Shown here: one piece after another, positions 1,105 to 53,800 of the stretch
Numbering within the stretch: the stretch's first letter is position 1
Layout: each line of letters begins with the position of its first letter
Assembly (NCBI GenBank): GCA_002269645.1
Contig: NIVC01002056.1
Span: 1 to 64,000 of the forward strand
From: Macrostomum lignano
Taxonomy: Eukaryota
Direction: 5' to 3'
Length of the DNA: 64,000 bases
The notes under the pieces: model-generated
Told to the model about the DNA's origin: nothing
The model's input: only the letters and a program-made list of their open reading frames with translations
Databases searched by the model: none
Position numbers and translations under genes: made by a program

Positions 1105-1153
1105 CCCCAGAAACCCAACATCTCCCAATCTCCCAATCTCCGTCCAGCCTCAC

Positions 1154-1795: not shown

Positions 1796-1866
1796 TTTCT
1801 CAATCTTTTTCTAACTTAAGTAATCCGTCTAAATATAAATTGTATTATATCAAATACTTATTTTCA

Positions 1867-2073
<207 letters not shown>

Positions 2074-2124
2074 TCAGAGAGCATGCGTGAATTTTTTGTT
2101 ATTTATAAATTTGTCAATTGTTTT

Positions 2125-3280: not shown

Positions 3281-4149
3281 CTGTCTTAGGCCGCTGGAGG
3301 TTAACGTCCAACAGGTGGCAAAAATCGAACTTCTGTCATTCGCCGAGCTCTTTCATTTATAATTCGTTGTAGCGCAATTTTGTGGGGCCTTAGCCGCCTT
3401 ATTTAGATTCATCTAACAGCTTAAAATCATTGCTTTCGTGCAGCAGGCGACTTAGGCTTACGCCTGTTTGTTGCTACACCGATAGCATACGTGGTTTAAA
3501 GGCATCTTGGTATTGGTATAATAGCTAAACTGCTATAATTAACTTCATCAGTTCTAAATGATAAATAACTGACCAGGTGTATTAAAGGAGCTCAAAAACA
3601 AAAGCTTTGTTATTCTATACCTGGAATCACTGTATTGGCACTCCAACTATCTACTATCTAACATCGCTTGCTCACACTTGCCTGCTCACTGGCGCGGAAG
3701 CTGAAATTATCCTCAAACAGAAATGATTTCAAAGTTGAAATATCCTCTTATATAATTGGCCTCGGGGTGTATATGGGAAGGTGTATGGCACCATGCACCA
3801 GCCCGCATGCAAAAACTTGGCTAGACAGAGCATTCAAGCGAAGTGCAAAGGCTCCAATATAAGCCTATAATGCATATATATGCCAAGGGCGAAGATTAAA
3901 CGGAATCATTGTTAAGCCTATACACTACAGCTCCATTGTAAATGACTTTGCCGAAATCTGGGAGACAAAAGTCAACGATGCGCGCGCGTCAAGGAGATTT
4001 TTGCTCTGCGAATAACTTTAAAAAATTCGCGTCGAAAACCTTTTTTTATCTTCCAGGCAATGGAATCCCTGGTTAGCCGGGAAATAACCCAGGTGAGGTG
4101 AAAAAATCCAAGATAGAATCCCTGGCAACTGTAAAATAACCAAGATGGA

Positions 4150-5160
4150 ACCCCTGTCACCCATATCTATCTACAGAAACCCCTATTGTCACCCATATCT
4201 ATCTACAGACAGAAACCCCTATTGTCACCCATATCTATCTACAGAAACCCCTATTGTCACCCATATCTATCTATAGAAACCCCTGTCACCCATACCAATC
4301 TATAAGAACCCCTGTTGTCACCCACATCTATCTATAGGAACCCCTGTCACCCACATCTATCTATAGGAACCCCTGTCACCCATATCTATCTACAGAAACC
4401 CCTATTGTCACCCATATCTATCTATAGAAACCCCTGTCACCCATACCAATCTATAAGAACCCTGTTGTCACCCACATCTATCTATAGGAACCCCTGTCAC
4501 CCATATCTATAGGAACCCATGTCACCCATATCTATCTATAGGAACCCCTGTCACCCACATCTATCTATAGGAACCCCTGTCACCCATATCTATCTACAGA
4601 AACCCCTATTGTCACCCATATCTATCTATAGAAACCCCTGTCACCCATACCAATCTGTAAGAACCCCTGTTGTCACCCACATCTATCTATAGGAACCCCT
4701 GTCACCCATATCTATCTATAGGAACCCCTGTCACCCATATAGGAACCCCTGTCACCCATATCTATAGGAACCCCTGTCACCCATATCTATAAGAACCCCT
4801 GTCACCCATATCTAGCTATAGGAACCCCTGTCACCCATATCTATTTATAGGAACCCCCTGTCACCCACATCTATCTATAGGAACCCCTGTCACCCATATC
4901 TATAAGAACCCTGTCACCCATATCTATAAGAACCCCTGTCACCCATATCTATAGGAACCCCTGTCACCCATATCTATAAGAACCCCTGTCACCCATATCT
5001 ATAGGAACCCCTGTCACCCATATCTATAAGAACCCCTGTCACCCATATCTATAAGAACCCCTGTCACCCATATCTATAGGAACCCCTGTCACCCATATCT
5101 ATAAGAACCCCTGTCACCCATATCTAGCTATAGGAACCCCTGTCACCCATATCTATTTCC
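4150..5160. repeat. ~24-28-bp minisatellite (ACCCCTGTCACCCATATCTAT[CTAT]AGGA)n in Pax intron 1
   Basis: Direct tandem periodicity; unit length varies with CTAT copy number. Confidence 0.95.
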
Positions 5161-5247
5161 ATATCTATTGGAAAAAACCTAGGTAATCCTTGTAAGGGTC
5201 CCTGTCGGTGACCTCTATATATATCACTTAAACTAATAGTAACTTAC

Positions 5248-5359
5248 CGTCAAACATCATTGTCGGAAGCTGCGAGCGCCTTGCTGGCTGCTGCGGCTGA
5301 GGCAGCGGTGGTGGCGGTGGCGGTGGCGCTTGAGGGTGTGACAGGAAATTGTCCATCAT
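5248..5359 (-). CDS. pax3/7: Paired-box gene first coding exon (Pro/Gln-rich leader)
   Basis: ATG at 5359; MMDNFLSHPQAPPPPPPPLPQPQQPARRSQLPTMMFD+G, then a perfect GTAAGT donor in phase 1 that joins exon 2 to give [12 protein letters not shown]. Confidence 0.8.
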
Positions 5360-5524
5360 TTTCCTCTCCAACCGAAAAAAACTTCCACTGATTAAAAGCG
5401 GCAAGCCTCAGTGCCGATGAGGGTTGGTCAACAGCTTGGCAATAAATAACTGCAGATTCCCAGTTATAAATTGCCTTCCATTTGTCTTAAACACCAGAGT
5501 GGAAGGGGAGCAGGGCAGCGCTGT

Positions 5525-5570
5525 GAGCCAGCCAATGAAAAGTTGAGCAGATAAATGTGGCGGAACCAAT
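5525..5570. promoter_or_regulatory. Two CCAAT boxes upstream of the Pax start codon
   Basis: AGCCAATG (CCAAT at 5532-5536) and AACCAATC (CCAAT at 5566-5570), ~170-210 bp upstream of ATG 5359. Confidence 0.45.
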
Positions 5571-5942
5571 CAGACCGGACTTGAATCAGCGCTTGAATCA
5601 TTTGTAAATAGTGAGGGGGGGCATTCTTATCGCAATTCCCTTAATCTATGAAAGCCTGTCTGTCTCAGTGACTGTCGACTCGGAGGAACTGGAGTCGATT
5701 TCTCTTTGGGTATGGATCATTAGTTTCTCTTATTAGGGAGTCTTATCGCCTAGTAACTGTTACTGCTACATGCTTCACTGCCTCTCGCTTGTTCCAATCT
5801 GCTTGATTTATTTGCAGGAACAGCTAGTGGGTGGCAGGGAGATGGATTGGGTGCGGAAGCGAACTGAGAGACCAGCCCATCGAATTCAGCTTGTTTTTAA
5901 CGGTCAAGACAGATGCTGAAGCTGAGAAATTGGATAATTAAA

Positions 5943-6495
<553 letters not shown>

Positions 6496-7359
6496 TAGCT
6501 GCATGCTGAGTATAGTTCACATCCATAAACCTCACTAATCAGCCAAAATGCAAGATACAAGAGAATAAAAAGACAAAGTGAAAATATTGATGCTGGGTCT
6601 TAGCAGATCATGACGTCCCGAAATTCGATTCAGCCAGCCTCCCCTCCTCCTACATCCCCTCAGCCGTCGCTCGTGCTAATTCGCAAAACCAGAGCAGCCT
6701 GGCGGGGGAGAGTAAAAATTCCTCACTATTAAAATTTGAAAATTTAAAACAGCCCCCCCCCCCTGCAGAGTCAGCCAGAGACTGCAGAATCCAAATGTAT
6801 CCAAATTCCATGGCGTTATGAGCTGGGAGAGCAACAAGTTTTTTTTCTGCAAACCGCCGCCAGGGGCTTTGCGTTTAGAGATGCGCAAGGGCGGCGGCGG
6901 TGGGTTTGGAGGAAATTTCGTATTTTTGATGAGGCTGACAGGTGGCGCTGCTCTTGGAGCGAGGAAAAAGTGACAGTTGCGCAGATTGGCAGCGGCGGCG
7001 ACAGCCTCTGGCGCGGGTGTTGGGCAGACCCAGTTAGCAGATAAAATTTCCTATTACATTATATAGGCCTATTAGGCCACTTAGACGGCCCGTTAAACCC
7101 GGGCCGTTAGCTTGCTGCAGGAGAAAGGTGCTCGCAACTGGAACATTATTCTGAAGGAATTTTAGGCCTATGCAGACTGATCCCCTTGAAGGACAACGGG
7201 CAATATAGAGAGCGGTATTGAGCTTGCCGCAGCTTAAAGATAGCTCAGACATGCCACTGCAGTCATGATGCATGCAGTTCATCTCTGATGATGGAGAAAT
7301 CTGGCGCGATATTTTGAACAGAATTTTTGAAAGTTTGAAGTTTACGGAGGGTCTTTCAG

Positions 7360-10300
7360 AGTGGATTTACAGAGTGCTATTTTGGATTTACAGAACGCCA
7401 TTTTGGATTTACAGAACGCCATTTTGGATTTACAGAGTGCCATTTTGGATTTACAGAATGCCATTTTGGATTTACAGAACGCCATTTTGGATTTACAGAG
7501 TGCCATTTTGGATTTACAGAGTGCCATTTTGGATTTACAGAGTGCCATATTGGATTTACAGAGTGCCATTTTGGATTTACAGAGTGCCATTTTGGATTTA
7601 CAGAGTGCCATTTTGGATTTACAGAGTGCCATTTTGGATTTTCAGAGTGCCATATTGGATTTACAGAGTGCCATTTTGGATTTACAGAGTGCCATTTTGT
7701 ATTTACAGAGTGCCATTTTGGATTTACAGAGTGCTATTTTGGATTTACACAACGCCATTTTGGATTTACAGAGTGCCATTTCGGATTTACAGAGCGCCAT
7801 TTTGGATTTACAGAGTGCCCTTTTGGATTTTCAGAGTGCCCTTTTGGATTTACAGAGTGCCCTTTTGGATTTTCAGAGTGCCATTTTGGATTTACAGAGT
7901 GTCTTTTGGATTTTCAGAGTGCCATTTTGGATTTACAGAGTGCCCTTTTGGATTTTCAGAGTGCCATTTTGGATTTACAGAGTGCCATTTTGGATTTACA
8001 GAGTGCCATTTTGGATTTTCAGAGTGCCATTTTGGATTTACAGAGTGCCATATTGAATTTACAGAGTGCCATTTTGGATTTCAGAGTGCCATTTTGGATT
8101 TACAGAACGCCATTTTGGATTTACAGAGTGCCATTTTGGATTTACAGAGTGCCATTTTGGATTTACAGAGTGCCATATTGAATTTACAGAGTGCCATTTT
8201 GGATTTACAGAGTGCCATTTTGATTGAATTTACAGAGTGCCATTTTGATTGGATTTACAGAGTGCCATTTTGATTGGATTTACAGAGTGCCATTTTGGAT
8301 TTACAGAGTGCCATTTTGATTGGATTTACAGAGTGCCATTTTGGATTTACAGAGTGCCATTTTGGATTTACAGAGTGCCATTTTGGATTTACAGAGTGCC
8401 ATTTTGGATTTACAGAGTGCCATTTTGATTTACAGAGTGCCATTTTGGATTTACAGAGTGCCATTTTGGATTTACAGAGTGCCATTTTGGATTTACAGAG
8501 TGCCATTTTGGATTTACAGAGCGCCATTTTGGATTTACAGAGTGCCATTTTGGATTTACAGAGTGCCATTTTGGATTTACAGAGTGCCATTTTGGATTTA
8601 CAGAGTGCCATTTTGGATTTACAGAGTGCCATTTTGGATTTACAGAATGCCATATTGGATTTACAGAGTGCCATTTTGGATTTACAGAGTGCCATTTTGG
8701 ATTTCAGAGTGCCATTTTGGATTTACAGAGTGCCTTTTTGGATTTACAGAACGCCATTTTGGATTTACAGAGTGCCATTTTGGATTTACAGAGTGCTATT
8801 TTGGATTTACAGAACGCCATTTTGGATTTACAGAACGCCATTTTGGATTTACAGAGTGCTATTTTGGATTTACAGAGCGCCATTTTGGATTTACAGAGTG
8901 CCCTTTTGGATTTTCAGAGTGCTTTTGGATTTACAGAGTGCCCTTTTGGATTTTCAGAGTGCCATTTTGGATTTACAGAGTGCCCTTTTGGATTTTCAGA
9001 GTGCCATTTTGGATTTACAGAGTGCCCTTTTGGATTTTCAGAGTGCCATTTTGGATTTACAGAGTGCCCTTTTGGATTTTCAGAGTGCCATTTTGGATTT
9101 ACAGAGTGCCATTTTGGATTTACAGAGTGCCATTTTGGATTTACAGAGTGCCATTTTGGATTTACAGAGTGCCATATTGATTTACAGAGTGCCATTTTGG
9201 ATTTCAGAGTGCCATTTTGGATTTACAGAGTGCCATTTTGGATTTACAGAGTGCCATTTTGGATTTACAGAGTGCCATTTTGGATTTACAGAGTGCCATA
9301 TTGAATTTACAGAGTGCCATTTTGGATTTACAGAGTGCCATTTTGGATTTACAGAGTGCCATTTTGGATTTACAGAGTGCCATTTTGATTGATTTACAGA
9401 GTGCCATTTTGGATTTACAGAGTGCCATTTTGGATTTACAGAGTGCCATTTTGGATTTACAGAGTGCCATATTGAATTTACAGAGTGCCATTTTGGATTT
9501 ACAGAGTGCCATTTTGGATTTACAGAGCCATTTTGGATTTACAGAGTGCCATTTTGGATTTACAGAGTGCCATTTTGGATTTACAGAGTGCCATATTGAA
9601 TTTACAGAGTGCCATTTTGGATTTACAGAGTGCCATTTTGATTGATTTACAGAGTGCCATTTTGGATTTACAGAGTGCCATTTTGGATTTACAGAGTGCC
9701 ATTTTGGATTTACAGAGTGCCATTTTGATTGGATTTACAGAGTGCCATTTTGGATTTACAGAGTGCCATTTTGGATTTACAGAGTGCCATATTGGATTTA
9801 CAGAGTGCCATTTTGGATTTACAGAGTGCCATTTTGGATTTACAGAGTGCCATTTTGGATTTTCAGAGTGCCATTTTGGATTTACAGAGTGCCATTTTGG
9901 ATTTACAGAGTGCCATTTTGGATTTACAGAGTGCCATTTTGGATTTACAGAGTGCCATTTTGGATTTACAGAGTGCCATTTTGGATTTACAGAGTGCCAT
10001 ATTTGGATTTACAGAGTGCCATTTTGGATTTCAGAGTGCCATTTTGGATTTACAGAGTGCCATTTTGGATTTACAGAGTGCCATTTTGGATTTACAGAGT
10101 GCCATTTGGATTTACAGAGTGCCATTTTGGATTTACAGAGTGCCATTTTGGATTTACAGAGTGCCATTTGATTTACAGAGTGCCATTTTGGATTTACAGA
10201 GTGCCATTTTGATTGGATTTACAGAGTGCCATTTTGATTGGATTTACAGAGTGCCATTTTGATTGGATTTACAGAGTGCCATTTTGGATTTACAGAGTGC

Positions 10301-10640
10301 CATTTTGGATTTAAAGAGTGCCATTTTGGATTTACAGAGTGCCATTTTGATTGGATTTACAGAGCGCCATTTTGGATTTAAAGAGTGTCATTTTGGATTT
10401 ACAGAGCGCCATTTTGGATTTACAGAGTGCCATATTGGATTTACAGAGTGCCATATTGAATTTACAGAGTGCCATTTTGGATTTACAGAGTGCCATTTTG
10501 ATTGAATTTACAGAGTGCCATTTTGATTGGATTTACAGAGTGCCATTTTGATTGGATTTACAGAGTGCCATTTTGGATTTACAGAGTGCCATTTTGATTG
10601 GATTTACAGAGTGCCATTCTGGATTTACAGAGTGCCATAT
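7360..10640. repeat. 21-bp satellite (GGATTTACAGAGTGCCATTTT)n, ~155 copies
   Basis: Direct tandem periodicity over ~3.3 kb; source of the DLQSAIL/WIYRVPF pseudo-ORFs. Confidence 0.99.
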
Positions 10641-11079
10641 TAATGGGATTTACTGAGCGTCACTTTGGAACTCTAGTATTCTTATTTTTTGCATATTAAT
10701 ACTGCAAAAAAGATGCCAAATTTATTAGCAAGTCTTTACTACTCAGATCAGTAGTTTATAAGGAAAATTTAAAAGTTTCTCGGTATAAAAATGAAGCTGA
10801 AACTAATTGAAGCACAAGAACAGAAGCAGATTTTATCAAAAAGCTGTAAAAATCAAATGCAGCAGGAAAGCAGTTGGACCACCTTCCAGCTCAAAAAATT
10901 CTTTGCATATTTTTATATTTTGAATAAACTATCGAAAGAAAACCATTAACAAAAAGGTGATAAAGCAAAAAAGAAACGTTTCTATAACAACTAGAAATAT
11001 TGGGGAGGCAAGCTTAGGGTGAGACTTTGACATGCGATTGCAGAACGCGACTCTTATTAAATGATATTATCAAATCTGC

Positions 11080-11600
11080 CTGAATAGTATGACTCTAATA
11101 GGGTGAGATTATCAAATTCGATTGAATAGAATGATTCTCATAGGGTGAGATTATCAAATCCGATTCGATGGATTGATTCTAATAGGGTGAGATCACCAAA
11201 TCCGATTCGATAGATTGATCCTAATAGGGTGAGAATATCAGATCCGATTCGATGGATTGATTCTCATAGAGTGAGATTATCAAATCTAATTCGATTGATT
11301 GATTCTCATAGGGTGAGATTATCAAATATGATTCGATGGATAGATTCTCATAGAGTGAGATTATCAAATCTAATTCGATTGATTGATTCTCATAGGGTGA
11401 AATTATCAAATCCGATTCGATGAATTGATTCTAATAGGGTGAGATTATCAAATCCGATTGAATAGAACAAATTTCATAGGGTAAGATTATCAAATCCGAT
11501 TCGATGGATTGATTCTCATAGGGTGAGATTTTCAAATCCGATTGAATAGAATGATTCTCTTAGGGTGAGATTCTCCCAAAAATTGAATGGTCGATTCTCA
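11080..11600. repeat. 42-bp minisatellite (CTCATAGGGTGAGATTATCAAATCCGATTCGATGGATTGATT)n, ~12 copies
   Basis: GGGTGAGA recurs at 11101, 11143, 11185, 11227; lies just downstream of the TEX11-like stop codon (possible 3'UTR). Confidence 0.9.
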
Positions 11601-11720
11601 TAGATGAGACTCTAATTGGAAACTGTTCTTCGGTTAAACCAATTAATTCTCAGGGGTCAAGAAAACGCAAAAAAATTCAAGACGAACTAAAGTCAGAACA
11701 GTAACCAGAACAAAAAACTC

Positions 11721-14700
11721 TCAATCAATATTAATAGGCGATTCTGGCACGCCGGATCCACTCGGCTCTGGCGAGCTTCCAGTTGACTGGCTGGCATCGA
11801 GATCCACTGGCGCTAATCGACGTCTGCCGAAACTTTTAAAATTGAAGCTTCGGGCCTGCGGTTTCGACTGCTTCTGCTGCTGTTGGTGCTGCTGCGGACC
11901 GGACCCACAAGCAAACATTTCTGACTGAGCCAAACTGAACAGCTCCGATCGGCCGGCCGCAGCTGCACTAAGCAGGCCAGGCAGAGGCGTCGAGTGGCCA
12001 ACGGACGAGGAAGCGGCCGACGTCCAAAAGCAGGGAGTCGATGGCGGCGGCGGTGGATCGACTGACTTCTTTAAACCCGGCAACGGCAGGTATGGACTAC
12101 GAATCAAGTTTTCTTTTAGCGCCAAAGGTAACACGGATGTTGGTTGGTTGCTAGGTCGGTTGCTTTCGCTGCTGAATACGGCGGAAGCGTCGACGACGAA
12201 CGAATTATTGTTGTCGATGCTGGAGACTTCGGAGAGCTTAAATAGCGGCTGCTGCTGCGGTGGTGGTTTTGCAGTTTCTGTGCCAGCCGAGGCATTGGAT
12301 AAAGAGAGCGAACTCAAGGACAACATCTGGCTAAACCGTGGAGCCTGCTGCTGTTCTTGTAGCTTACTTTTGTTGTTGACACCTTCGTCACCACATTGCT
12401 CTGTGAGATGTTCCTCGGCTGCAACTGGAGTTGGCGCCTGCGATGTGGCTCCTGGGGATTCAAGTTGATCGTTAAAGAAGTGCGGCTCAATATCGCCGGA
12501 GGGAACTTCTGCCATAGTTGACTGCGTGGACGATTTAGCTGCATCAGTCTGCGAGGTTGAAGACTCATTAACCGTTGCATCAGTCGACTTCTCAACTAGT
12601 TCATCTGGTGAAGTATCTCTTGAATAACTTGATCTCGGTACTGAAGCCTCACCAGTGTTCTTGCCTGATGGTTCAGCGTTTGAGTGTTTTGCGCGTAACG
12701 ACACTGAAGCCTCAGAGGCAGTTTGACCCGATGACTCAACGATTGAGTGATTTGATGTTGGTACCGAGTTTTCAGCTGTATTTTGGTCCGATGACTTAAC
12801 AGTTGGTTTATATGATGTCGGAATAGAGTTCTGGGATGTAGTATGGCTTGATGGCTCAGCAGTAGGCTGGTGTGATGACTCAACGGTTGAGCGTACCGAT
12901 GTCGGTACTGAAACTTTGGAAGAAGCATGGCTTGATGATTCAGCAGCAGACTGGTGTGATGACTCAACGGTTGAGCGTACCGATGTCGGTACTGAAACTT
13001 TTGAAGAAGCATGGCCTGACGACTCAACGGCTAAGCAGTCCGGTATCGTTACCTTGGCAGAAGTCTGGTTTGACGACTCAACGGTTGAGCACTCTGATGT
13101 CGGTACCGAAGCCTTGGCAGAATTTGGACGAGAAGAATCGACAACAGTCAATTCTTCTGTTGATTTTTTCAGCTCCGTGAACTGAATGGTTGACTTGGAG
13201 TTTGATTGTGCAGCAGAAGTTTCATTATGCGTCAGAGCATGGGAGCTGCTCAAAGTGGCCGATGAGGCGGTAAACTTTGACGCAGACAAATCAATCGCAC
13301 CCAGTTGCCGACACACTCGACTTCTATTGAATATGGGTGACTGCGGTACAGCATTGAAATCTGTGCTACCTGCTGCATTGTGCGTTGACGAGACTGCCGA
13401 CTGCCTGCACACGGTGGACTTTGAGTCACAAGTCTGTTCTGCTGCATATCTCACATACTCAACAGCTGGGGGAGGCATATCAGGTGCAGTTAATGGGTTT
13501 GCGTTGCTGCACAAAGCTTGGCTGCTCTTGTTAGCAGTGCAATTGGTACTAGCATTTTTCTTGACTTGCACCTCGGCTTCAGAAAATTCCTTCACTGTAT
13601 TAACAGGCGGCAAGACTCCCGTTGAATCTAGACCATTAGCAACTGCGAGTGTTAAAGTGCTGTAAGAATCCTCAAGAATTGGCGATGTAATATGCTCCTC
13701 ATCCAGCTTCACTTTAGTATTTCGACCATGACAGCTCGATGCAGCGGATGTCTGCGACAGACTTCTCTTCCGACTAGTAGGCGCAACAGATAGCGTAGCG
13801 CTTTGTGACTCGCACGTGAACTCCTCATTTGGACTTCGAATCAAGTCAGTTGAGCCTCCTGTCTGAGAAAAACGAGCTGCATTTTTATCAGAATTCTGAG
13901 ACAGTATCAGCTTTTCCAGAGTCTCATAGACAGAAGTAGTCGCGGGAGACTCAAATGACGGCTCTTTCAGAATCTTCTTGTCCAGAGTCTCGTAGACGGA
14001 GGCGTTCGCGGGAGACTTGAATGAAGAAGCTTTCTGAGTCTTCTTGTCCAGAGACTCGTAGGCAGAAGCATTCGCGGGAGACTCAAACGACGGCTCTTTC
14101 AGAATCTTCTTGTCCTGAGACTCGTAGGCAGAAGCATTCGCGGGAGACTCGAATGACGGCTCTTTCAGAATCTTCTTGTCCAGAGACTCGTAGGCAGAAG
14201 CGTTCGCAGGAGACACAAATGACGGCTCTTTCAGAATCTTCTTGTCCAGAGACTCGTAGGCAGAAGCATTCGCGGGAGACTCGAATGACGGCTCTTTCAG
14301 AATCTTCTTGTCCAGAGACTCGTAGGCAGAAGCATTCGCGGGAGACTCAAACGACGGCTCTTTCAGAATCTTCTTGTCCTGAGACTCGTAGGCAGAAGCA
14401 TTCGCGGGAGACTCGAATGACGGCTCTTTCAGAATCTTCTTGTCCAGAGACTCGTAGGCAGAAGCGTTCGCAGGAGACACAAATGACGGCTCTTTCAGAA
14501 TCTTCTTGTCCAGAGACTCGTAGGCAGAAGCATTCGCGGGAGACTCGAATGAAGAAGCTTTCTGAGTCTTCTTGTCCAGAGTCTCGTAGACGGAGGCGTT
14601 CGTGGGAGACCCAAATGAAGAAGCTTTCTGAGTCTTCTTGTCCAGAGACTCGTAGACAGAAGCATTCGCGGGAGACTCAAATGAAGAAGCTTTCTGAGTC

Positions 14701-15577
14701 TTCTTGTCCAGAGACTCGTAGACAGAAGCATTCGCGGGAGACTCAAATGAAGAAGCTTTCTGAGTCTTCTTGTCCAGAGACTCGTAGACGGAGGCACTTG
14801 CAGTAGACTTTAGCAGAGACTCTTTGTAAACTTTTCTGTCCAGAGACTCGTAGGCAGAAGCGTTCCCAGCAGACTCTGACGAAGACTCTTTCTGCATTTT
14901 GGCATTCAGAAGGCTATCAAGCCTCGTGGCCGGCGATCTAGCAAACATTGGAGTATCCGATCTTGAGAAGGCTGAAGAAGGCCTATCCGGTAGGCACTTG
15001 TCGATAGCTGGGAAAGCTTCATCAAGCGATTCGTTGGGAGCAGCGGTGGTGTCGGAGCTCGGTCCAGCAGCTGCCGGAGCTGCGCCACCCGGTGCCAAGG
15101 ACTGCCAATAGGACGGAGCCTCGCTACGCAACCGATTCATCGTTGACATAATGGATTGGTATTTGCTGCTCAGAGTGTTCAGCTGGGCGGCGTAGGAGCT
15201 GCTTGGCACTGACTTCGGTGGCAATGGCTGGACGCGCGGCGACAGGGGTACAGGAGACGGCGGCGGAAATGGTGGCGACTGAGGCAGACGCGGTGGTCTT
15301 GAAGATTCATCAGTGATGAAGTTCTTGGCTACGGTGAACTTGACATTCGAGGAAGTGGTTACAGATGATGTTGATTTAGCTGCTGTTGTTATTGCTTTTG
15401 TTTCTGCTGTTGCTGCTGTTGTTTCTGTTGTTGTTATTGTTGTTATTGTTGTTATTGTTGTTGCTGTTGTTGTTGTTTCTGCTGCGGCTGCTGATTGACT
15501 GCCAGTGTTCACAAGCTTGGCCAGATCCGGGAGGCGGCTGTGGATGTAGCGGGACTCCGATTCCTTTAGGCTGAGAG
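11721..15577 (-). CDS. Giant terminal exon (3857 nt, ~1285 codons): Ser/Thr/Pro-rich disordered region with poly-Thr, PxxP stretches and 22-aa repeats
   Basis: Uninterrupted ORF (track 11721-15512) extends 5' to a polypyrimidine TTTTCCAG acceptor before 15577, phase 1, matching the GTAAGA donor after 15834; TGA at 11721-11723. Confidence 0.9.
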
Positions 15578-18500
15578 CTGGAAAACAAGGAATAAAAGTA
15601 GGAACTGCGTGGGCTTATTGTGTAAAAACTCTTAGTAATCATTATTATTAAATTCTGTGGGCTTCAAGACATCAGAGATATACTATGTAGATGTTAGATT
15701 GATATCAGATACATGTACACGCTAGATAGATATCAATGATATTAGACAAATGTTGGATAGACATGAAATATAAAATTTATAGATACTAATTGGACACAAA
15801 GTACGCTCCCATTAGATGTAAAAACAGTCTTACTAGCAAGCAGTTTGGCACCGTGAGCCGTCGCTTCAGCTCGGGTGCTGTCGTTCAACAGTAGCACCTG
15901 AAGTTGCAGGAGTCCAACGAATGCGAGCTTGCCTCGAGTCAGTTGCAGCTTCTCTGTTGCCATAGTAACACTCAGACCGATTAGTTCGGGCATTCGAAGC
16001 AATTCCCCGTCCGAGTTGATGATTTTGCTACAAATGAGAAATAATGAATTGCTGACATGAAGTTCATAAAAGTTTTAATCTACACTGAGGTGGTACGAGT
16101 CAATTTGCCCCAGTCTCACTTGATGCAGTAGGCCTGAAACTCAATTGCTGCTTTGGCAATTGGCCAACAGAAATCTTTGCAAGCGGCTAGTCGAGTCAGC
16201 TGTTCCAGGGCGCCGGTGAACTGACCGAGGCCCTTGATGTAGGACACGATTGAAAAGCGAAAACTGAGGTACCTGCCGATGGCGGAGTCCTGCAGCTGCG
16301 GGTTGTTGAGGAGATCAAAACTTGACAAAGAACTTTTGTCGAGGTTCCGAAATCACGAAATCAAATATCCTTCCCAGTTCTAAATCCCAACGCCGATTAG
16401 AAATCTCGATTTGAAATCCCAGAAATCAGCTTTATAGATTTTGAGGATGGATTAACTCATTGTAGATAAACCTTAGCTATTCACGATGGAAATACATGTA
16501 AAATATAGAAATAAAGTTTTTACAAACAAAAAAGGTTCCAAAATCGATTATGACTTATCAAGGTCAACGAAAATATAATATAATAACTAATAAGGATGAT
16601 AAAATATTTGATTACACCTGTCCTAATGGGCAGATGTGCAACCGACAGCTCAGCCGCAGCTATTGCGCGGCGCATCTGAAGGCTGCGTACGGCTGTTCAG
16701 TCCAAGGACTGGGGGTCGCCACACACACCCTCAATTACCCCAGCTAATGCTGGCACCCATTTTACAGCTGGGTGAACTGAAGCAATGCAGAGTTAAGTGT
16801 CTTGCTCAAGGACAATAATTGTTCCGAATGGGTCCAGAATCGAACCCCCGACCTTTCAGTCGCGAGTCCAAGGGGATATCGTCCTACAACCAGCACTGAG
16901 ACAATTCTGCCCATTCCGCTACTCCTGAGCCAATAATGTACGGGCACGCACTCACAGGGTGTAAAGTGGCCCTGACTTTCTAAATGTCAGACATGAATGT
17001 GGCCACAAACCACGGTAACTATATATTATCTCCCATACACCCGCTGTCATTGCATCCCGCTCTCACCTCATTAGCCATCCCGGCAACAGTGACTCCAGTA
17101 GCAATGGATTCTTTGCTGCCCTCCTGAAGCAGAGTCTCAGCGTATAGGCGCAACAGGATCGCCTGAAAGAATCGGTTCAATGGTTATTGAAAAATGCTTT
17201 CATTTTAAAATACTCAGTCTCTTTCATAGAGAGAGAGAGTGAGAGAGAGAGAGACAGTACCTTATCGAAGCTGGCCATGCGCACTGAGGAGCTTTTTGCC
17301 AGATTAAATGCAACGCTGAGCCAGTGAATGGCGTCAGAAAATTTTCCATCTTGGAAGCGTTGCAGCCCGAAGCGGTAGAGCAGGCTGATAAATCGGAGCG
17401 ACTGGTTTATTGGCAGGTTGGAGTAGATTTATAATAACGTAGGTTGGATTGTTAGATTGGTAGTTGGACACGTCGGTAGATAGTTAAGTAGTTTTATATT
17501 TAGGTATGTCGACAGTTTAACAAATTGGTTGCTGGGTAGTTTGGTAGTTGGGTAGGTTTGTTTTTGGGTAGGTTGGGTGCTAGGTAGGTTGGGTGCTAGA
17601 TGGGTTGGTTGTTGGGTAGGTTGGGTGCTAGGTAGGTTGGGTGCTAGGTAGGTTGGGTGCTAGATGGGTTGGTTGTTGGGTAGGCTGGGTGCTAGGTAGG
17701 TTGGGTGCTAGGTAGGTTGGGTGCTAGATGGGTTGGTTGTTGGGTAGGCTGGGTGCTAGGTAGGTTGGGTGCTGGGTATCTTTGGGTAGGTTGGGTGTTG
17801 GTTAGGTTGGTTGTTGGGTATTGTTGAGTAGGTTGGGTGTTGGTTAGGTTGGTTGTTGGGTAGTTTATATTGGGTTATGTTAGGCTGGTTGTTGGCAGCA
17901 TTGATAGATCTATGTTGGCAACTGTGTTGGGTAGATAAGCACTGCGTCAAGCGGTAGTCAGCCATTAACTTACGTGCATATTGAGTTTAGCATCGCTAAC
18001 TAAATCTAGCAGAAGATTCTCATAGTCCAATACCTTGTGATCTTTGTTCCTGCCGTCCATCTGGAAAGCATTAGTTTGAAACCATAACTGTAATACTACG
18101 TCTATTAGAGTGCAATAGCGGTTAGGCTGTATGCTCGCGCACTTACAAACCAGATCTCTAACTGCATTTTAATCATAGTCAATGCTACTGAATTTGAAAA
18201 ATGTCTCAAATCGACGTTTCCGCCGCTAAAGTACACCTTGGCCTCGTTGTAATAGGCCTTGGTGAAGCCCAGCACTCGCTGACAGTCGGCCGTACTGTTG
18301 TGGATAAGGAACAGGCTGCAAGTTTCCATGGCACACTGGAAGTTGGTACGTTTTTAAAAAGTAAAACTGATAAACAGGCGCGATTCTTGTCAATTGTAGA
18401 GACTAGTCTCTAATAAATAAAAGCATCATACCACGCAAAAGAACTTCATATCGCGGATGCGCTCGCTAAACGATGGTTCAACAGACAGAAACAGTTCGAG

Positions 18501-20389
18501 CAAAAGGGCTTTGACTGTAAAAAAAAGAGTTGGTGAAAGTCGAAAGTGCAATCGATATTACGAGTACAAATGTGAGCTTATGATCGAGTTGGTTGAGGAT
18601 TTAATGGCTGCTTAAATGGCGGAGGCGGATTGAATGGCGGATAGAGGGGGCGGATTGAATGGTGAATAGAGGGGGCGGATCGAATGGTGGATAGAGGGGG
18701 CGGATTGAATGGCGGATAGAGGGGGCGGATTGAATGGCGGATAGAGGGGGCCGATTGAATGGCGGATAGAGGGGGCCGATTGAATGGCGGATAGAGGGAG
18801 CCGATTGAATGGCGGATAGAGGGGGGCGATTGAATGGCGGATAGAGGGGGCCGATTGAATGGCGGATAGAGGGAGGCGATTGAATGGCGGATAGAGGGGG
18901 CCGATTGAATGGCGGATAGAGGGGGCCGATTGAATGTCGGGTGGAGGGGGCGGGTTGGATGGCGCATATAGAAGGTGGATTGAATTGAGGAAACAAATAA
19001 ATAGAAGGTGCAAGAATTCAAAGGCAGCATACATGCATCACCAACCTTCAAAGAATGGCTTTCCCACACGCAGTCGTTTTCCGGAAGAGGTGGCAACAGA
19101 GTTCCACAAATTGCAGCATTGCTCCAGAATCTGCAAACGTTTTAGTTCGGTTCCGGTTGTTTTGGGAAATCCTACATCAAATGATTAAAGCCTACGTAAA
19201 GCACAAATTGCGTACCTGAAAACGATGTTCGCTCAGGTGCAAACCGGCCAATAATTGCCTCGAAATCAATCTTCGACAGCTGGTTATACTGTCAAAAAGA
19301 TTTTGACGCCTGCAGAACGCTGCCTTGACGTCTTTGAGATGGTCTATTAAGGATTGAGGAGAAATAAGTTAACAGAACAGCATAGCCTTTTGAAATTAAG
19401 GAGTCTGGAGGATGCATCCTTGAAATACGACCTAATCAGTTGTCAACATCTTAATACACGACACTAGCTACCAGTGGTTGACACTCTTCTGGCAGTGTCA
19501 ACAACTTACAAGCAACACTAGCAGTGGCTCGTCACTCTCTCCTGATACAATGTCAAACAACTTACTAAGCAACACTACCAATGGCTCGTCACTCTCTCCT
19601 GACACAATGTCAAACAACTTACTAAGCAACACTATCAGTGGCTCGTCACTCTCTCCTGATACAATGTCAAACAACTTACTAAGCAACACTACCAATGGCT
19701 CGTCACTCTCTCCTGACACAATGTCAAACAACTTACTAAGCAACACTATCAGTGGCTCGTCACTCTCTCCTGATACAATGTCAAACAACTTACTAAGCAA
19801 CACTATCAGTGGCTCGTCACTCTCTCCTGACACAATGTCAAACAACTTACTAAGCAACACTACCAATGGCTCGTCACTCTCTCCTGGCACAATGTCAAAC
19901 AACTTACTAAGCAACACTAGCAGTGGCTCGTCACTCTCTCCTGGCACAATGTCGCTCACAGACGGCGCCATATATGATTCTGTGCATTGATAATCACAGT
20001 CAGAAGTTGCGACAGCAGTCGAGTCAATGTTGCCGGCACCTGTGTCAATATCGCTGTCGCTTTCATCGCTGTCCCTGTTGTGGCTGGATGCCTGCGGCAC
20101 CATTGGACTCCATTGAGTTTGATAGGCATCTTTAGAACTTCCGTTAGTTGAAATGAATCGCTTCTTTCTTGGCACGTTTACGTTTGCCTCAGATTCTTAA
20201 GATAAAAGGTAAGGGATGATTAATTATTTTTTTACTAAATGAGCACTTTATTTTTATCGGTTTAGAGGGTGTTTCAAATTTAATATAATATATACATACC
20301 ATCATCTAGACTTGATGACGTCAAGGATGATGGATTGGGACTTCCTGCACGCCTCATCGACACAACTCGGTCCATAGAGAATTGCTGTC
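11721..20389 (-). CDS. TEX11: TEX11/ZIP4/Spo22-like TPR protein with a long disordered C-terminal extension (multi-exon gene model)
   Basis: Exons 20300-20389, (19566 to 19908)-20195, 19216-19343, ~19046-19130, 18147-18335, 17974-18060, 17261-17401, 17067-17162, 16120-16295, 15834-16027, 11721-15577; all junctions phase-compatible except 19130-exon/18335. Ordered motifs Q-ILEQCCNLWNSVAT, DHKVLDYE, LYRFGLQRFQDGKFSDAIHWLSVAFNLAK and AILLRLYAETLL...MANE resemble, from memory, human TEX11 [53 protein letters not shown] and AKVLRLLATNYL...LANKE; no database search was run. Confidence 0.65.
13918..14870 (-). repeat. Coding 66-bp tandem repeat, 15 units of ~SAYESLDKKILKEPSFESPANA
   Basis: 66-bp period (GACTCG at 14053 and 14119); translation in the ORF track. 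Confidence 0.95.
15370..15480. repeat. (GTT/GCT)n trinucleotide tract encoding poly-Thr/Ala on the minus strand
   Basis: TTG/CTG triplet run within the giant exon. Confidence 0.85.
15834..16027 (-). CDS. TEX11-like internal exon (KIINSDGELLRMPELIG...HGAKLLA)
   Basis: TAG acceptor (phase 2), GTAAGA donor (phase 1), open frame. Confidence 0.75.
16120..16295 (-). CDS. TEX11-like internal exon (LQDSAIGRYLSFRFSIVSYIKG...FQAYCI)
   Basis: CAG acceptor (phase 0), GTGAGA donor (phase 2), open frame. Confidence 0.72.
16620..16900 (-). mobile_element. tRNA-derived CORE-SINE-like element in an intron
   Basis: Minus strand has Pol III B-box GGTTCGATTC (16837-16846) followed by TGTCCTTGAGCAAGACACTTAACTCTGCATTGCTTCAGTTCACCCAGCTGTAAAATGGG (16756-16815), closely resembling the MIR/CORE consensus GTGACCTTGGGCAAGTCACTTAACCTCTCTGTGCCTCAGTTTCCTCATCTGTAAAATGGG; A-box degenerate, element ends uncertain. 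Confidence 0.75.
17067..17162 (-). CDS. TEX11-like exon (AILLRLYAETLLQEGSKESIATGVTVAGMANE)
   Basis: TTTCAG acceptor, GTGAGA donor, 96 nt, phase 0-0. Confidence 0.82.
17261..17401 (-). CDS. TEX11-like TPR exon (SLRFISLLYRFGLQRFQDGKFSDAIHWLSVAFNLAKSSSVRMASFDK)
   Basis: CAG acceptor, GTACTG donor, 141 nt, phase 0-0; TPR-like helix pattern. Confidence 0.82.
17530..17900. repeat. ~16-20-bp GT-rich minisatellite (GGGTGCTAGGTAGGTT-like)
   Basis: Degenerate tandem periodicity in a TEX11-like intron. Confidence 0.8.
17974..18060 (-). CDS. TEX11-like exon (MDGRNKDHKVLDYENLLLDLVSDAKLNMH)
   Basis: TTTCCAG acceptor, GTAAGT donor, 87 nt, phase 0-0. Confidence 0.78.
18147..18335 (-). CDS. TEX11-like exon (CAMETCSLFLIHNSTADCQRVLG...QLEIWF)
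   Basis: TTCCAG acceptor, GTAAGT donor, 189 nt, phase 0-0. Confidence 0.75.
18615..18940. repeat. 25-bp minisatellite (GATTGAATGGCGGATAGAGGGGGCG)n, ~13 copies
   Basis: 25-bp period (TGAAT at 18631, 18656). Confidence 0.95.
19046..19130 (-). CDS. TEX11-like exon (ILEQCCNLWNSVATSSGKRLR...), 3' boundary uncertain
   Basis: TTTGCAG acceptor, phase 0; NLWN motif; the best donor (GTTGGT after 19046) is phase 1 whereas the next exon needs phase 0. Confidence 0.6.
19216..19343 (-). CDS. TEX11-like exon (HLKDVKAAFCRRQNLFDSITSC...SEHRFQ)
   Basis: TAG acceptor (phase 1), CAG|GTACGC donor (phase 0), only one open frame. Confidence 0.65.
19500..19955 (-). repeat. 57-bp minisatellite, 8 units, each carrying a GTAAGT 5' splice site; open in frame (SKLFDIVSGESDEPLxVLL)
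   Basis: ACTTAC on + strand at 19504, 19560, 19617, 19674, 19731, 19788, 19845, 19902. Confidence 0.95.
19908..20195 (-). CDS. TEX11-like N-terminal exon (acidic/Ser-rich, basic motif PRKKR); 3' end at one of seven in-phase donors between 19908 and 19566
   Basis: TTAAG acceptor (phase 1), open frame, phase-1 donors in the repeat. Confidence 0.6.
20300..20389 (-). CDS. Probable upstream exon of the TEX11-like gene, contains candidate ATG at 20375 (MDRVVSMRRAGSPNPSSLTSSSLDD)
   Basis: TTGCAG acceptor, GTATGT donor, phase 1 matching the acceptor at 20195. Confidence 0.55.
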
Positions 20390-23409: not shown

Positions 23410-25260
23410 ATGTTAAACGGACGCGGTCAACTGTCCTTATCGAGCCCTAAGCGTGACAGCTGGTCATCATCCGGTGATACCAGTTACTATGACGCCAGAG
23501 ACCAACTCACTGGCGACGAGCTTGAAGCAGACGAAGCCAATGCTGGGAGATACAACGCGGCGCTAAGCGTAGTTGACACTTCGCAGGACTTACAAAATGC
23601 GCACGACAGAGCCACAGCCTATTACGACAACACAGCCTATCTCCATGACAACGGTCCCGTAGCTACTAAGAGTCTAGCAAGCAGTGATGGCACTCTGAAA
23701 GGCACTTTCTACAAGAAGAAAAAGATGTTCCAACGAAACAAGAAGAACCAGTTACCAGCGCACCTGAGAGCTGAGACAAACATAGATTCTACAACAACCG
23801 GAGGGGAGGATGAAAGTGCCGCACCTGGCGTTGAAGTAGAAGAGACTGACGACGACTTCGGTTTTAAATTCCGGCCATCGATACCGCCGCCAAGGCCGCT
23901 GCTTCAGTCTGCACCATCCGTTGGCCTGACTCTCGAAGACACGCTCAGCATGAAGCGATCGGACCGCCCAGCAACTGCCGCGCATCCAGTAGGCTTCCCT
24001 AACGGCGGCGCAGAGATCCGCAGCAGCGGAATCCTGCTGGAAACCAACATCGACTCCGAATTGGACGACAACTCTTCAATCCCGTCATCGTACTACCCTG
24101 ATCAGATGAAGCGACCCGAACAACAGTCCCAGCAACAGCTACAAAGCTCTCACCATGACGGTCAACCGGGCATTTCTCAGCCATACGTTCGACCGCCTCC
24201 AGCCGTGGTGCCCATGGTGCCATTTCATTTCAACACCGCAGTTCGCGAAGAGGATGAGGATACAGATGCCACCGCGGCCGTGGAAGATGACGACGAAAAC
24301 TCTTCTGGGACAACACCCGCCGGCTTCCACGAGGAGGTACCTCGAATGGCATCAGGCAGCGGCTGGAGTCCATACTCTCCGGTGTCTCCAAGCGGAACCG
24401 TCATAGAAAACGGAGTGCCGCAGCACAAGTTTGCTCCGTCTCCTTTCAAATCGCCCGCGGCCACGTCAATGACCAAATCGGCTCAGTCGCAGGCTGGCAG
24501 GAGTCCGCATCAATACCCTGGCCCGGCGCCACCTCGGATGATGGCGCGGTTAGATACAGATTTTGAAGTGAGCTCAGACGAAATGGACTTCACAGAGACG
24601 ACGCCGGGAGACATGGCTATTCTGGAGTATTCCAGAGCCTTGGAGGAGGCCGAGCGAATGCGCCACATCGCCGGTGGTAACTACGTATTCGCTAAGCCTC
24701 CAGCCTCGCAGTTGACCAACTCAGTGCCCGATTTCCTCAATTACTCGGGTCGCTACGCTAGCAACATCACCGGCTCCGTGGGAATTCGGGCCAAGTCGAT
24801 GAACACGCTCACAGCGTCGCGCAGCTCCCTGCGCAGCAGCGGCGTCAGCGGCAAAGAACTACTGACGCCAGGCAGGGCCAGACGGGCCTCCCTGCGCAGG
24901 AGTCGCTTGGGTCTGGAGCCCGGCGGCGGCGTCTACACCATCCCGGTTTTTGACGACTCCAACCCGACTCTGGTGTCCGGCAACAGTCAAACTAACTTTG
25001 CAGGGCCGAGGCACTTGCCGGGAGAGTTCGACGAACCGACGGTACCCGAGGTACAGCATCACGGACCAGTGCGGTCGAGCAAGCAGATGAGCTGCCTGGA
25101 ACGATGCGACAATGTCTGCTGTCCGAACACGCCGCGTAGGCTACTGGTCCGGTATCTGCTCATTGCCGGCATCTGCGTCTGCTGCGTCCTGCTGGGTGTA
25201 GCGGTGGCGGTTATTGTCATCAGCACCAGGCCAAAGACGGATAATACCAGCGGCGCCTAG
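23410..25260 (+). CDS. 616-aa uncharacterised disordered protein with one C-terminal transmembrane helix (tail-anchored-like)
   Basis: Non-repetitive 1851-nt ORF; C-terminus CLERCDNVCC...RRLLVRYLLIAGICVCCVLLGVAVAVIVIS-TRPKTDNTSGA; AATAAA at 25457. Confidence 0.85.
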   Translation: MLNGRGQLSLSSPKRDSWSSSGDTSYYDARDQLTGDELEADEANAGRYNAALSVVDTSQDLQNAHDRATAYYDNTAYLHDNGPVATKSLASSDGTLKGTFYKKKKMFQRNKKNQLPAHLRAETNIDSTTTGGEDESAAPGVEVEETDDDFGFKFRPSIPPPRPLLQSAPSVGLTLEDTLSMKRSDRPATAAHPVGFPNGGAEIRSSGILLETNIDSELDDNSSIPSSYYPDQMKRPEQQSQQQLQSSHHDGQPGISQPYVRPPPAVVPMVPFHFNTAVREEDEDTDATAAVEDDDENSSGTTPAGFHEEVPRMASGSGWSPYSPVSPSGTVIENGVPQHKFAPSPFKSPAATSMTKSAQSQAGRSPHQYPGPAPPRMMARLDTDFEVSSDEMDFTETTPGDMAILEYSRALEEAERMRHIAGGNYVFAKPPASQLTNSVPDFLNYSGRYASNITGSVGIRAKSMNTLTASRSSLRSSGVSGKELLTPGRARRASLRRSRLGLEPGGGVYTIPVFDDSNPTLVSGNSQTNFAGPRHLPGEFDEPTVPEVQHHGPVRSSKQMSCLERCDNVCCPNTPRRLLVRYLLIAGICVCCVLLGVAVAVIVISTRPKTDNTSGA

Positions 25261-25462: not shown

Positions 25463-25870
25463 GACTTATTCTTACCTGTGTCATTTTGCTGGCTTCAAAA
25501 CAATTTCTGTGATGCATTGGAAATACTTCTTTTTACCTTACTTGGATAGCGTTGAAAGCTACCTTTTTGTTTATCTGTTTTGTACAGCTTCGCGTTTTTC
25601 CTGACCAAAAAGTAGCTCTTGTACTTTAAAACTGAGCGAAATTTTTCATGACACGATCTTTTCGCTTTTGCTATTTTGTAGTTCATATGTCTACTCTTTG
25701 TTGCATGTACTTTTTGTCAAATATTCCTGAAAATGTTATATCATATATCTATTAATAGGATTTTAGCTCATTATTTACAAAAAGTTAGAATAGTTGTTTC
25801 AGCTTCCAAGGCAAAATATAATCAGAATCGTCTTTAATATTTGTGCTTAAAGTCTACCAATAGTTACATG

Positions 25871-27115
25871 TTCCTTCCTTCCTTCCTTCCTTCCTTCCTT
25901 CCTTCCTTCCTCCCTTCCTTCCTTCGTTCCTTCCTTCCTTCCTTCCTTCCTTCGTTCCTTCCTTCCTTCCTTCCTTCCTTCCTTCCTTCCTTCCTTCCTT
26001 CCTTCCTCCTTCCTTCCTTCCTTCCTTCCTCCCTTGCTTCCTTCCTTCCTTCCTTCCTTCCTTCCTTCCTTCGTTCCTTCCTTCCTTCCTTCCTTCCTTC
26101 CTCCCTTCCTTCCTTCCTTCCTTCCTTCCTTCCTTCCTCCCTTCCTTCCTTCCTTCCTTCCTTCCTTCCTTCCTTCCTCCCTTGCTTCCTTCCTTCCTTC
26201 CTTCCTTCCTTCCTTCCTTCCTTCCTTCGTTCCTTCCTTCCTTCCTTCGTTCCTTCCTTCCTTCCTTCCTTCCTTCCTCCCTTGCTTCCTTCCTTCCTTC
26301 CTTCCTTCCTTCCTTCCTTCCTTCCTTCCTTCCTTCCTTCCTTCCTTCCTTCGTTCCTTCGTTCCTTCCTTCCTTCCTTCCTTCGTTCCTTCCTTCCTTC
26401 CTTCGTTCCTTCCTTCCTTCCTTCCTTCCTTCCTTCCTTCCTTCCTTCGTTCCTTCGTTCCTTCCTTCCTTCCTTCCTTCGTTCCTTCCTTCCTTCCTTC
26501 CTTCCTTCCTTCCTTCCTTCCTTCCTTCCTTCCTTCCTTCCTTCCTTCCTTCCTTCCTTCCTTCCTTCCTTCCTTCCTTCCTTCCTTCCTTCGTTCCTTC
26601 CTTCCTTCCTTCGTTCCTTCCTTCCTCCCTTCCTTCCTTCGTTCCTTCCTTCCTTCCTTCGTTCCTTCCTTCCTTCCTTCCTTCCTTCCTTCCTTCCTTC
26701 CTTCTTTCCTTCCTTCCTTCCTTCCTTCCTTCCTCCCTTGCTTCCTTCCTTCCTTCCTTCCTTCCTTCCTTCCTTCCTTCGTTCCTTCCTTCCTTCCTTC
26801 GTTCCTTCCTTCCTTCCTTCCTTCCTTCCTTCCTTCCTTCTTTCCTTCCTTCGTTCCTTCCTTCCTTCCTTCGTTCCTTCCTTCCTTCCTTCCTTCCTTC
26901 CTTCCTTCCTTCCTTCGTTCCTTCCTCCCTTCCTTCCTTCCTTCTTTCCTTCCTTCCTTCCTTCCTTCCTTCTTTCCTTCCTTCCTTCCTTCCTTCCTTC
27001 TTTCCTTCCTTCCTTCCTTCCTTCCTTCTTTCCTTCCTTCCTTCCTTCCTTCCTTCCTTCTTTCCTTCCTTCCTTCCTTCCTTCCTTCCTTCCTTCTTTC
27101 CTTCCTTCCTTCTTT
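25871..27115. repeat. (TTCC)n polypyrimidine microsatellite, ~1.25 kb
   Basis: Tetranucleotide run with scattered TTCG/TTTC variants, between convergent genes. Confidence 0.99.
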
Positions 27116-27904
27116 TCCCCCATTCATCAAATTCTTCTTCCTTCAAACTTCAACGGGTGACAGACTGTTAGTTACCGATTTTATCATCAAATTATTATTG
27201 AAATATTATCGTAATCGAATTGCAAAGTGAAGGGCAAATCTGTACATAGGAATAAAAATTTTTGATAGTTGAATGCGCAGCTGCGACAGGAACTGTATTC
27301 GCCAGAGTTCAATAGAAAAGCATGCCAAAATATCGGAGATCAGGTTGTTAAAATCCGAAATTCATGAATAGTAAATGCTTATACTTACATGTAACAAGCA
27401 ACAGTAAGCATATTATATTTAGATAGTATAGTTTGCAGCCAGACAATGCACCCTCTGACCTTTTGAGGAATTGGCTCTAATGAGTGTGAATCACACAATA
27501 ATTCGTTAACAAGACCAATCAGACAAAAATTTTGTTCAAATCCTCACTGAGCGGAATTATTGCTCAAGTAGTTTTTGCATTGACAACTGCAGGAAAATAT
27601 CGATATCTTCTTTTAAAATGAAACAAGATCAAATTTGTGAATGTATAGTCAAGCAGAGTAGCAAAGTGATGAGGACGACTTTTTGGGGCAAAGCTATAAG
27701 TCTGGCCTCTGACACCGTTCTGTGCATGTATATCGAAGCCAACAGATAAACTAGGGAGAATATTGCATATCAAGCATCAGTCGTCAGTCAAATTGATAAA
27801 GATGTCAATCCAGTTGATAATTCTACTCAAATCGGCACCCAGTGTAAAAATCAATTAAATCAAAGAGTCAAGACACTAAAAGTTCAGGACAAGCATGAGG
27901 CTCG

Positions 27905-28751: not shown

Positions 28752-53800
<25,049 letters not shown>

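Follow-up and report, generated by a model that had tools for sequence, protein, structure and literature searches.

We analysed a stretch of 64,000 nucleotides (nt) of the flatworm Macrostomum lignano (contig NIVC01002056.1, assembly GCA_002269645.1; hereafter the window), which carries on its minus strand a gene related to TEX11/ZIP4. This is probably a single expressed M. lignano gene for a protein of about 1,800 amino acids (aa), in which a disordered N-terminus is followed by a helical domain similar to the N-terminal part of TEX11 and by a low-complexity tail. The acidic, Ser-rich N-terminus of ~110 aa contains a PRKKR patch resembling a nuclear localisation signal, and its sequence suggests that the protein is nuclear. 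The second part is predicted to be an all-alpha domain of ~435 aa with ~20 helices, forming roughly 10 hairpins of the tetratricopeptide repeat (TPR) type, and appears to be a remote homologue of vertebrate TEX11 residues ~50-430. The third part is a tail of ~1,250 aa with fourteen 22-aa tandem repeats, and nothing corresponds here to the second, C-terminal half of TEX11/ZIP4, with its TPRs ~10-21 and its Ecm11/TEX12-binding WN patch. Since the similarity lies below the Pfam cut-off and both the full-length TPR array and the WN patch are lacking, the protein is best called TEX11-related and not a canonical TEX11/ZIP4 family member. The gene is already in GenBank as a hypothetical protein and hence is not unannotated.

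Gene structure and transcript support

Reading of the strand and assembly of the exons yielded one continuous coding sequence (CDS) of 5,400 nt on the minus strand, running in 12 exons from the ATG at 20375 to the stop at 11721. All 11 introns have GT-AG borders, and the single stop codon in the CDS is the terminal one. The exons are as follows:

20300..20375, minus strand: exon 1 (coding part), ATG at 20375-20373
19908..20195, minus strand: exon 2, acidic Ser-rich disordered N-terminus with the PRKKR basic patch, ending at the first CTTA/GTAAGT donor
19216..19343, minus strand: exon 3, opening helices of the alpha-helical domain
19046..19130, minus strand: exon 4, carrying QILEQCCNLWNSVAT, the counterpart of the TEX11/ZIP4 motif QIEExAVNLWNWAVT
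18432..18514, minus strand: exon 5
18147..18335, minus strand: exon 6
17974..18060, minus strand: exon 7
17261..17401, minus strand: exon 8, encoding LLYRFGLQRFQDGKFSDAIHWLSVAFNLAK, the best TEX11 match (LCYNFGVETY..KYEESSFWLSQSYDIGK); the Pfam SPO22 match starts here
17067..17162, minus strand: exon 9, with AILLRLYAETLL as the counterpart of TEX11 AKVLRLLATxYL
16120..16295, minus strand: exon 10, including KDFCWPIAKAAIE, which matches TEX11 LDFCLNIAKLL
15834..16027, minus strand: exon 11, final helices of the TEX11-like domain, with the donor after 15834
11721..15577, minus strand: exon 12, the giant terminal exon of 3,857 nt, stop TGA at 11723-11721

The exon 11/12 junction joins the donor TTGCTA/gtaaga after 15834 to the acceptor ttgttttccag/CTCTCA before 15577 in phase 1. 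Exon 12 comprises 1,284 sense codons followed by the TGA, while each of the other five frames contains 38-81 stops, and 500 dinucleotide-preserving shuffles of the exon gave longest open frames of 145 codons on average and never more than 267; the length of this open reading frame (ORF) is thus far beyond chance. At the other end of the gene, the ATG is preceded at a distance of 14 nt by an AG acceptor (20391-20390), directly after which the annotated transcript of the GenBank copy g4 begins (about 20387-20389). The annotated protein P0014 opens with QQFSMDRVV, the sequence at exon 1, and the acceptor is presumably a spliced-leader (trans-splice) acceptor, as its position would predict.

The gene corresponds to BOX15_Mlig015105g4 (window and NIVC01002056.1 show 100% identity over 19.4 kb), labelled in GenBank as a hypothetical protein and annotated from RNA-seq. 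An exhaustive search with the tail recovered PAA86506.1 (copy g6), whose cluster mates PAA58640.1 (g5, 1,632 aa) and PAA61232.1 (g4, 844 aa) complete a set of three annotated copies. The splice pattern of all three proteins agrees residue for residue with the 12-exon model, including the exon 11/12 join and the first exon 2 donor, which is seen in PAA58640.1 and PAA61232.1 (...EPLLVLL/NHLKD); the exon 10 acceptor at 16295 is likewise borne out by annotated proteins (..MANE/LQDSAIGRY). Exons 1-12 are kept in one CDS in g5, and the exon 11/12 junction is spanned in g4 and g6. The M. lignano GenBank annotation consists of genome-guided RNA-seq assemblies in which trans-splice and poly(A) sites mapped by experiment define the gene ends (PMC5730564), and because it was built on such assemblies it counts as transcript evidence for the giant exon in the same mRNA. 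The TEX11-like gene is therefore real and expressed, and forms one single transcript.

Compared with the 12-exon model, the annotated proteins contain 3-8 fewer units of the 22-aa repeat, and g5 has in addition 6 substitutions. The g4 CDS annotation on NIVC01002056.1 ends inside the repeat (about window 14403), and the counterpart of the underlying 66-nt repeat in locus L001 lies at 16380-17297. The missing units in the GenBank CDSs look like repeat collapse in short-read transcript assemblies. The g6 copy is 99.3% identical to the window and g5 ~99.8% in unique sequence; between g4 and g5, unique exons and introns differ by ~0.2%, with 0 differences in the 2,873 nt of non-repeat tail. When the g6 locus was aligned with window 18135-11000, 4 mismatches and 21 gaps were counted in 7.1 kb, and this dominance of indels suggests that the two are haplotigs or duplicates in which long-read errors were left uncorrected, and that real divergence is not the cause.

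The initial annotation had described TEX11-like exons spliced through a 15834/15577 junction to a low-complexity terminal exon of 3.86 kb. The GT-AG model and the annotated copies confirm this splicing, the junction proved exact and recurs in the three GenBank proteins, and the size and openness of the terminal exon are as given above. The proposed extent of 11721-19343 was right at the stop and wrong at the start: exon 3 begins at position 19343, and the two coding exons upstream of it (20375-20300 and 20195-19908) had been missed.

Similarity of the helical domain to TEX11/ZIP4

In the Pfam scan of the helical domain, SPO22 (PF08631) was the sole credible match (E 0.0014-0.003, 17.5-18.5 bits, model positions 22-128 of 274), and neither the reversed sequence nor five shuffles of the domain matched this family; for comparison, Mus pahari TEX11 scores 192.7 bits on SPO22. 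Supplementary Table S5 of PMC8575954 supplied the first 399 residues of ZIP4/TEX11 for 16 species. A hidden Markov model of 10 vertebrate TEX11 N-termini gave the flatworm domain 26.7 bits (E 1.4e-10 as a single comparison, Z=1), whereas none of 2,000 global or local shuffles exceeded 7.7 bits and a consensus TPR protein of eight repeats scored -5.8 bits. Using a seven-sequence TEX11 profile, the maximum score among 177,635 distinct PDB sequences, many TPR proteins included, was 11.2 bits, and the full flatworm protein obtained 24.1 bits (E 1.3e-4 at a database size equal to the PDB). Alignment of the domain with TEX11 by hhalign extended over 371 colinear columns (E 5.7e-5), and BLASTP against Mus pahari TEX11 found 25% identity over 144 aa (E 8e-4). 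When 1,529 segments from all six frames of the window were scanned with the TEX11 profiles, exon 8 ranked first and exon 4 second.

The spacing of the motifs LWN/YxFG/WLS/LRL is 149/18/24 residues in the flatworm protein, 149/18/25 in zebrafish and 150/18/24 in mouse. The match covers TEX11 residues ~50-347 with good support and continues more loosely to ~430; in rodent TEX11 the SPO22 domain occupies residues 176-431, and the flatworm helical domain ends at about the equivalent point. A single-sequence AlphaFold model of low confidence places about 20 helices in residues 109-545. Outside the TEX11 comparisons, a phmmer search of the PDB with the domain returned designed consensus TPRs only (E~0.05), and in word-indexed protein searches the helical domain, whether in crude or in spliced form, matched only the UniProt fragment A0A1I8IUK2. 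From these alignments and profiles we conclude that the helical domain is a remote but genuine, colinear relative of the N-terminal third of TEX11/ZIP4.

The tail and the internal repeats

The structured part of the protein comprises ~435 aa (residues ~110-545). Exon 12 itself encodes 1,285 aa, of which the first ~30 are helical and the remainder is low-complexity and rich in S/A/T/P/E/K, so that the tail beyond the domain measures ~1,250 aa. Its composition is 19% Ser, 11% Ala, 8% Thr and 8% Pro, with 29 S/T-P and 18 S/T-Q sites of the phosphorylation type. No Pfam domain was found in the tail, nor were TPRs: a profile of TEX11 residues 400-707 had no match in the tail or anywhere else in the window. 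The tail also lacks a WN dipeptide and contains only two Trp, and a search of the minus strand at 1-11720 for further TEX11-like exons met just satellites and a PAX gene. The tail has no homologue outside M. lignano in a set of 1.84 billion representative proteins; the other matches of this search were low-complexity, fell on the repeat region and had E-values no better than 1e-8. Codon usage of domain and tail correlated with r 0.25 and that of an out-of-frame control with 0.34, so this comparison does not discriminate.

Three elements of the tail and the N-terminus were mapped:

13911..14876, minus strand: 66-nt tandem repeat, in frame in exon 12, 14 copies of the 22-aa unit and a degenerate 15th
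15123..15191, minus strand: the sole helix predicted in the tail, residues ~644-666, AAQLNTLSSKYQSIMSTMNRLRSE, from a low-confidence single-sequence model
19496..19953, minus strand: 57-nt tandem repeat duplicating the exon 2/intron 2 boundary, 8.1 copies

The 22-aa unit reads YESLDKK(TQKASS/ILKEPS)FESPANAS(A/V). Its variable columns are distributed 5/7/8 over the three codon positions, and 158 synonymous stand against 321 non-synonymous codon differences, which indicates no clear constraint. The helix at ~644-666, outside of which no regular structure is predicted for the tail, may be a candidate short binding element; in the last 950 aa, the single-sequence AlphaFold model contains no helices. 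Each of the seven full copies of the 57-nt repeat keeps the frame and an in-phase CTTA/GTAAGT donor, while the GTAAGT donor of the last, truncated copy is out of phase. According to the RNA-based annotation the copies beyond the first are intronic, whereas the ab initio UniProt fragment reads through 6 copies; in principle, donor choice could give isoforms with 1-7 copies of the 19-aa unit SKLFDIV(S/P)GESDEPL(L/I/V)VLL. Introns 4 and 7 also bear tandem arrays (18624-18968 and 17525-17863).

The initial annotation had assigned ~300 aa to the TEX11-like region and ~1285 aa to a disordered tail. The colinear match to the TEX11 N-terminus was upheld and the length was not, as the structured part is longer; for the tail, the figure is that of exon 12 as a whole, helical beginning included. 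Its statement that no further TPRs follow the junction holds for the tail and the rest of the window. It had also called for a SPO22/TEX11 profile search, in which the TEX11 profiles match specifically and the Pfam SPO22 match falls below the cut-off. Of the outcomes named beforehand as speaking against it, neither occurred: a SPO22/TEX11 profile match exists, and the giant exon is part of the same gene, with no additional TPR exons. Overall, the interpretation offered there is partly supported.

Weighing of alternative explanations

Several observations weigh against a single gene with a TEX11-derived domain as the full account. The SPO22 score is under the Pfam gathering cut-off (27.5 bits) and the Pfam scan of the full-length protein had no match at E<=0.01; the hhalign probability is 66%, for a low-diversity profile compared with a single sequence; both AlphaFold models are of low confidence (pLDDT 41 and 33); and the similarity comes without a bridging orthologue from another flatworm. 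Furthermore, it is uncertain how many 22-aa repeats the real mRNA contains, since the genome encodes more units than the annotated CDSs, and the three genomic copies, ~99.8% identical in unique sequence, are too alike for a selection test on the tail. No expression or localisation data for Mlig015105 were found, including in the supplementary tables of PMC5816591, PMC5730564 and PMC12896417 as far as these were covered (one table in part). A literature search likewise found no paper joining Macrostomum with TEX11, nor ZIP4 in Platyhelminthes.

The main rival, a possible explanation to which we give a smaller though real share of belief, is a lineage-specific truncated paralogue or chimera, in which a partial duplicate of the TEX11 N-terminus was fused to repeat-derived coding sequence; a canonical TEX11 elsewhere in the genome would then do the ZMM work and the present gene would have a different function or little function. 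Such an origin would fit a tail without homologue anywhere else, in a genome full of expanding minisatellites that occur also within this CDS and at an exon boundary, and the part of the family that is most conserved (PMC8763056) is the one missing here. M. lignano is moreover a recent polyploid with many duplicated genes (PMC5730564, PMC12896417). On the other side, a search with TEX11 and flatworm-domain profiles retrieved no second TEX11-like protein of M. lignano, which is weak evidence as this word-limited search returned six proteins (four rodent TEX11 proteins, one chimeric rodent protein and A0A1I8IUK2) and is uninformative on other flatworm TEX11 genes; also, the name TEX11 does not appear in the examined part of an M. 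lignano germline/neoblast gene table.

A generic TPR-like solenoid whose resemblance to TEX11/ZIP4 arose by convergence is, in our view, an unlikely reading of the domain. Identity to TEX11 is only 18-25%, the SPO22 match does not reach the Pfam threshold, and the strongest local match is one TPR-like hairpin, which BLASTP weakly aligns also to another TEX11 repeat. Against convergence, no ordinary TPR Pfam family matched the domain better than E 0.1; on the TEX11 profiles the consensus TPR protein scores -5.8 bits and PDB proteins at most 11.2, in contrast to 24-27 for the flatworm protein; and four motifs over 190 residues hold their spacing within one residue.

It is very improbable that exons 1-11 and the giant ORF represent two genes, with a spliced leader added at the 15577 acceptor and the ORF as a cistron of its own, downstream in a shared transcriptional unit. 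M. lignano commonly has polycistronic units that trans-splicing resolves (PMC5730564), but the frame is open for 159 codons between this acceptor and the first ATG, the exon 11/12 junction keeps the phase, and the TBONE-processed annotation, in which units are cut at mapped trans-splice sites, leaves exons 1-12 joined in g5 and the junction spanned in g4 and g6.

Identity as FANCD2, for which nothing speaks apart from the UniProt name ("Fanconi anemia group D2 protein") of the 280-aa fragment A0A1I8IUK2 (P0001; exons 1-4, window 19046-20375), has next to no probability, as neither the Pfam FancD2 family nor a PDB FANCD2 chain matched at E<=10 and a separate M. lignano gene bears a real FancD2 Pfam domain; the name given to this exon 1-4 fragment is probably wrong.

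Other features of the window

The window is extremely rich in mini- and microsatellites, which take up a very large part of its length, and these arrays create long spurious ORFs in several frames. The following tandem arrays are among them:

5897-6560, tandem array
7272-10551, tandem array
25841-27230, tandem array
36306-38144, tandem array
38710-40724, tandem array
42583-44233, tandem array
56850-62000, tandem array

A PAX paired-box gene is situated on the minus strand at ~2098-1850 and ~1398-1168; the stitched peptide matches Pfam PAX with E 3e-33 and the second part with E 2.6e-8. Its first part uses three reading frames within ~200 nt, and the gene is either a pseudogene or affected by indel errors of the long-read assembly. 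At 23410-25260 on the plus strand lies an intron-less ORF of 616 aa that has no Pfam match; most of it is low-complexity, and its C-terminal part contains a hydrophobic segment of the transmembrane type. This ORF is an annotated gene, located ~3 kb upstream of the TEX11-like gene on the opposite strand in both the g4 and g5 loci. In addition, exon-like segments encoding immunoglobulin domains were detected on the minus strand at 30116-29451 and 35161-34865 (Pfam ig E 2.4e-7; V-set E 0.007), probably belonging to an Ig-superfamily gene.

Possible function and significance

The ZMM crossover machinery has Zip4/TEX11 as its hub, and yeast Zip4 has the Zip2 N-terminus, Spo16, Zip3, Msh5 and Red1 as partners (PMC5859969). 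By analogy with this hub, the TPR platform retained in the flatworm protein would probably dock partner proteins, and both partner binding and a meiotic role would follow from this analogy. The tail might supply multivalent short linear motifs or phosphorylation sites that stand in for the rigid C-terminal TPR module, in which case the link to the synaptonemal-complex central element would be made differently or lost. A stronger version, in which the gene is the sole Macrostomum TEX11/ZIP4 orthologue and its C-terminal TPRs and WN patch were replaced by a repeat-bearing disordered tail that couples through multivalent short motifs or phase separation, we hold to be doubtful; if true, the ZMM hub would have been rewired in this recently polyploid flatworm, in which transgenesis is possible.

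Mutations in the C-terminal WN patch, the best-conserved surface of Zip4/TEX11, occur in azoospermic men, and the patch is proposed to tie synaptonemal-complex assembly to crossover designation in organisms from yeast to mouse (PMC8763056). A family relative that has kept just the N-terminal third and bears a huge disordered tail may indicate that this coupling can be built differently, or be a truncated duplicate with a new role. The question is directly testable in M. lignano, which offers RNA interference, transgenesis, transparent gonads and a recently duplicated karyotype, and the weight of the finding would rise considerably if this were the sole TEX11/ZIP4 gene of the species and expressed in meiocytes. 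With this analysis, a protein that GenBank lists as "hypothetical" receives a tentative identity, and the UniProt name "FANCD2" for its N-terminal fragment is called into question.

Comparison with known systems

As in TEX11/ZIP4/Spo22, the protein has an N-terminal helical region and SPO22 domain, colinear with TEX11 ~50-430, and SPO22 is its best Pfam match. The motifs QIxE..NLWN..T, LxYxFG, WLS..(F/Y)..(A/G)K, A..LRL.A and (D/E)FC...(A/V)K are common to both. Yeast Zip4 carries 21 TPRs over its whole length and its most conserved surface is the C-terminal patch with the WN motif binding Ecm11, while in mouse the TEX11 fragment 637-947 binds TEX12 (PMC8763056). Family members are also characterised by expression specific to meiosis or the germline, by a complex with ZIP2/SHOC1 and SPO16 and by binding to MSH5, ZIP3 and axis proteins (partners in PMC5859969). 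Unlike these proteins, whose helical repeats cover ~900-1,000 aa, the flatworm protein has ~435 aa of them, is devoid of the C-terminal WN patch that forms the Ecm11/TEX12-binding site (PMC8763056), and adds an acidic N-terminal extension of 110 aa and a low-complexity tail of 1,250 aa.

Short rodent TEX11 isoforms (569-709 aa, e.g. Mus pahari isoform X2) show that C-terminally shortened products are predicted in other animals as well; in them, the SPO22 domain is still followed by ~270 aa of TPRs, and a long disordered tail is lacking. In layout, with a docking domain ahead of a very long S/T/P-rich tail that contains repeats, the flatworm protein resembles scaffolds built from a folded domain and a long intrinsically disordered region, although it has no sequence relationship to any described scaffold, and condensate formation by the tail is pure conjecture. 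Finally, a parallel that is no more than an idea exists with TaZIP4-B2 (Ph1) of polyploid wheat, a duplicated ZIP4-family gene that underwent divergence in that genome (PMC8575954, PMC10266424); a recent polyploid is also what M. lignano is, but TaZIP4-B2 keeps the full-length TPR architecture.

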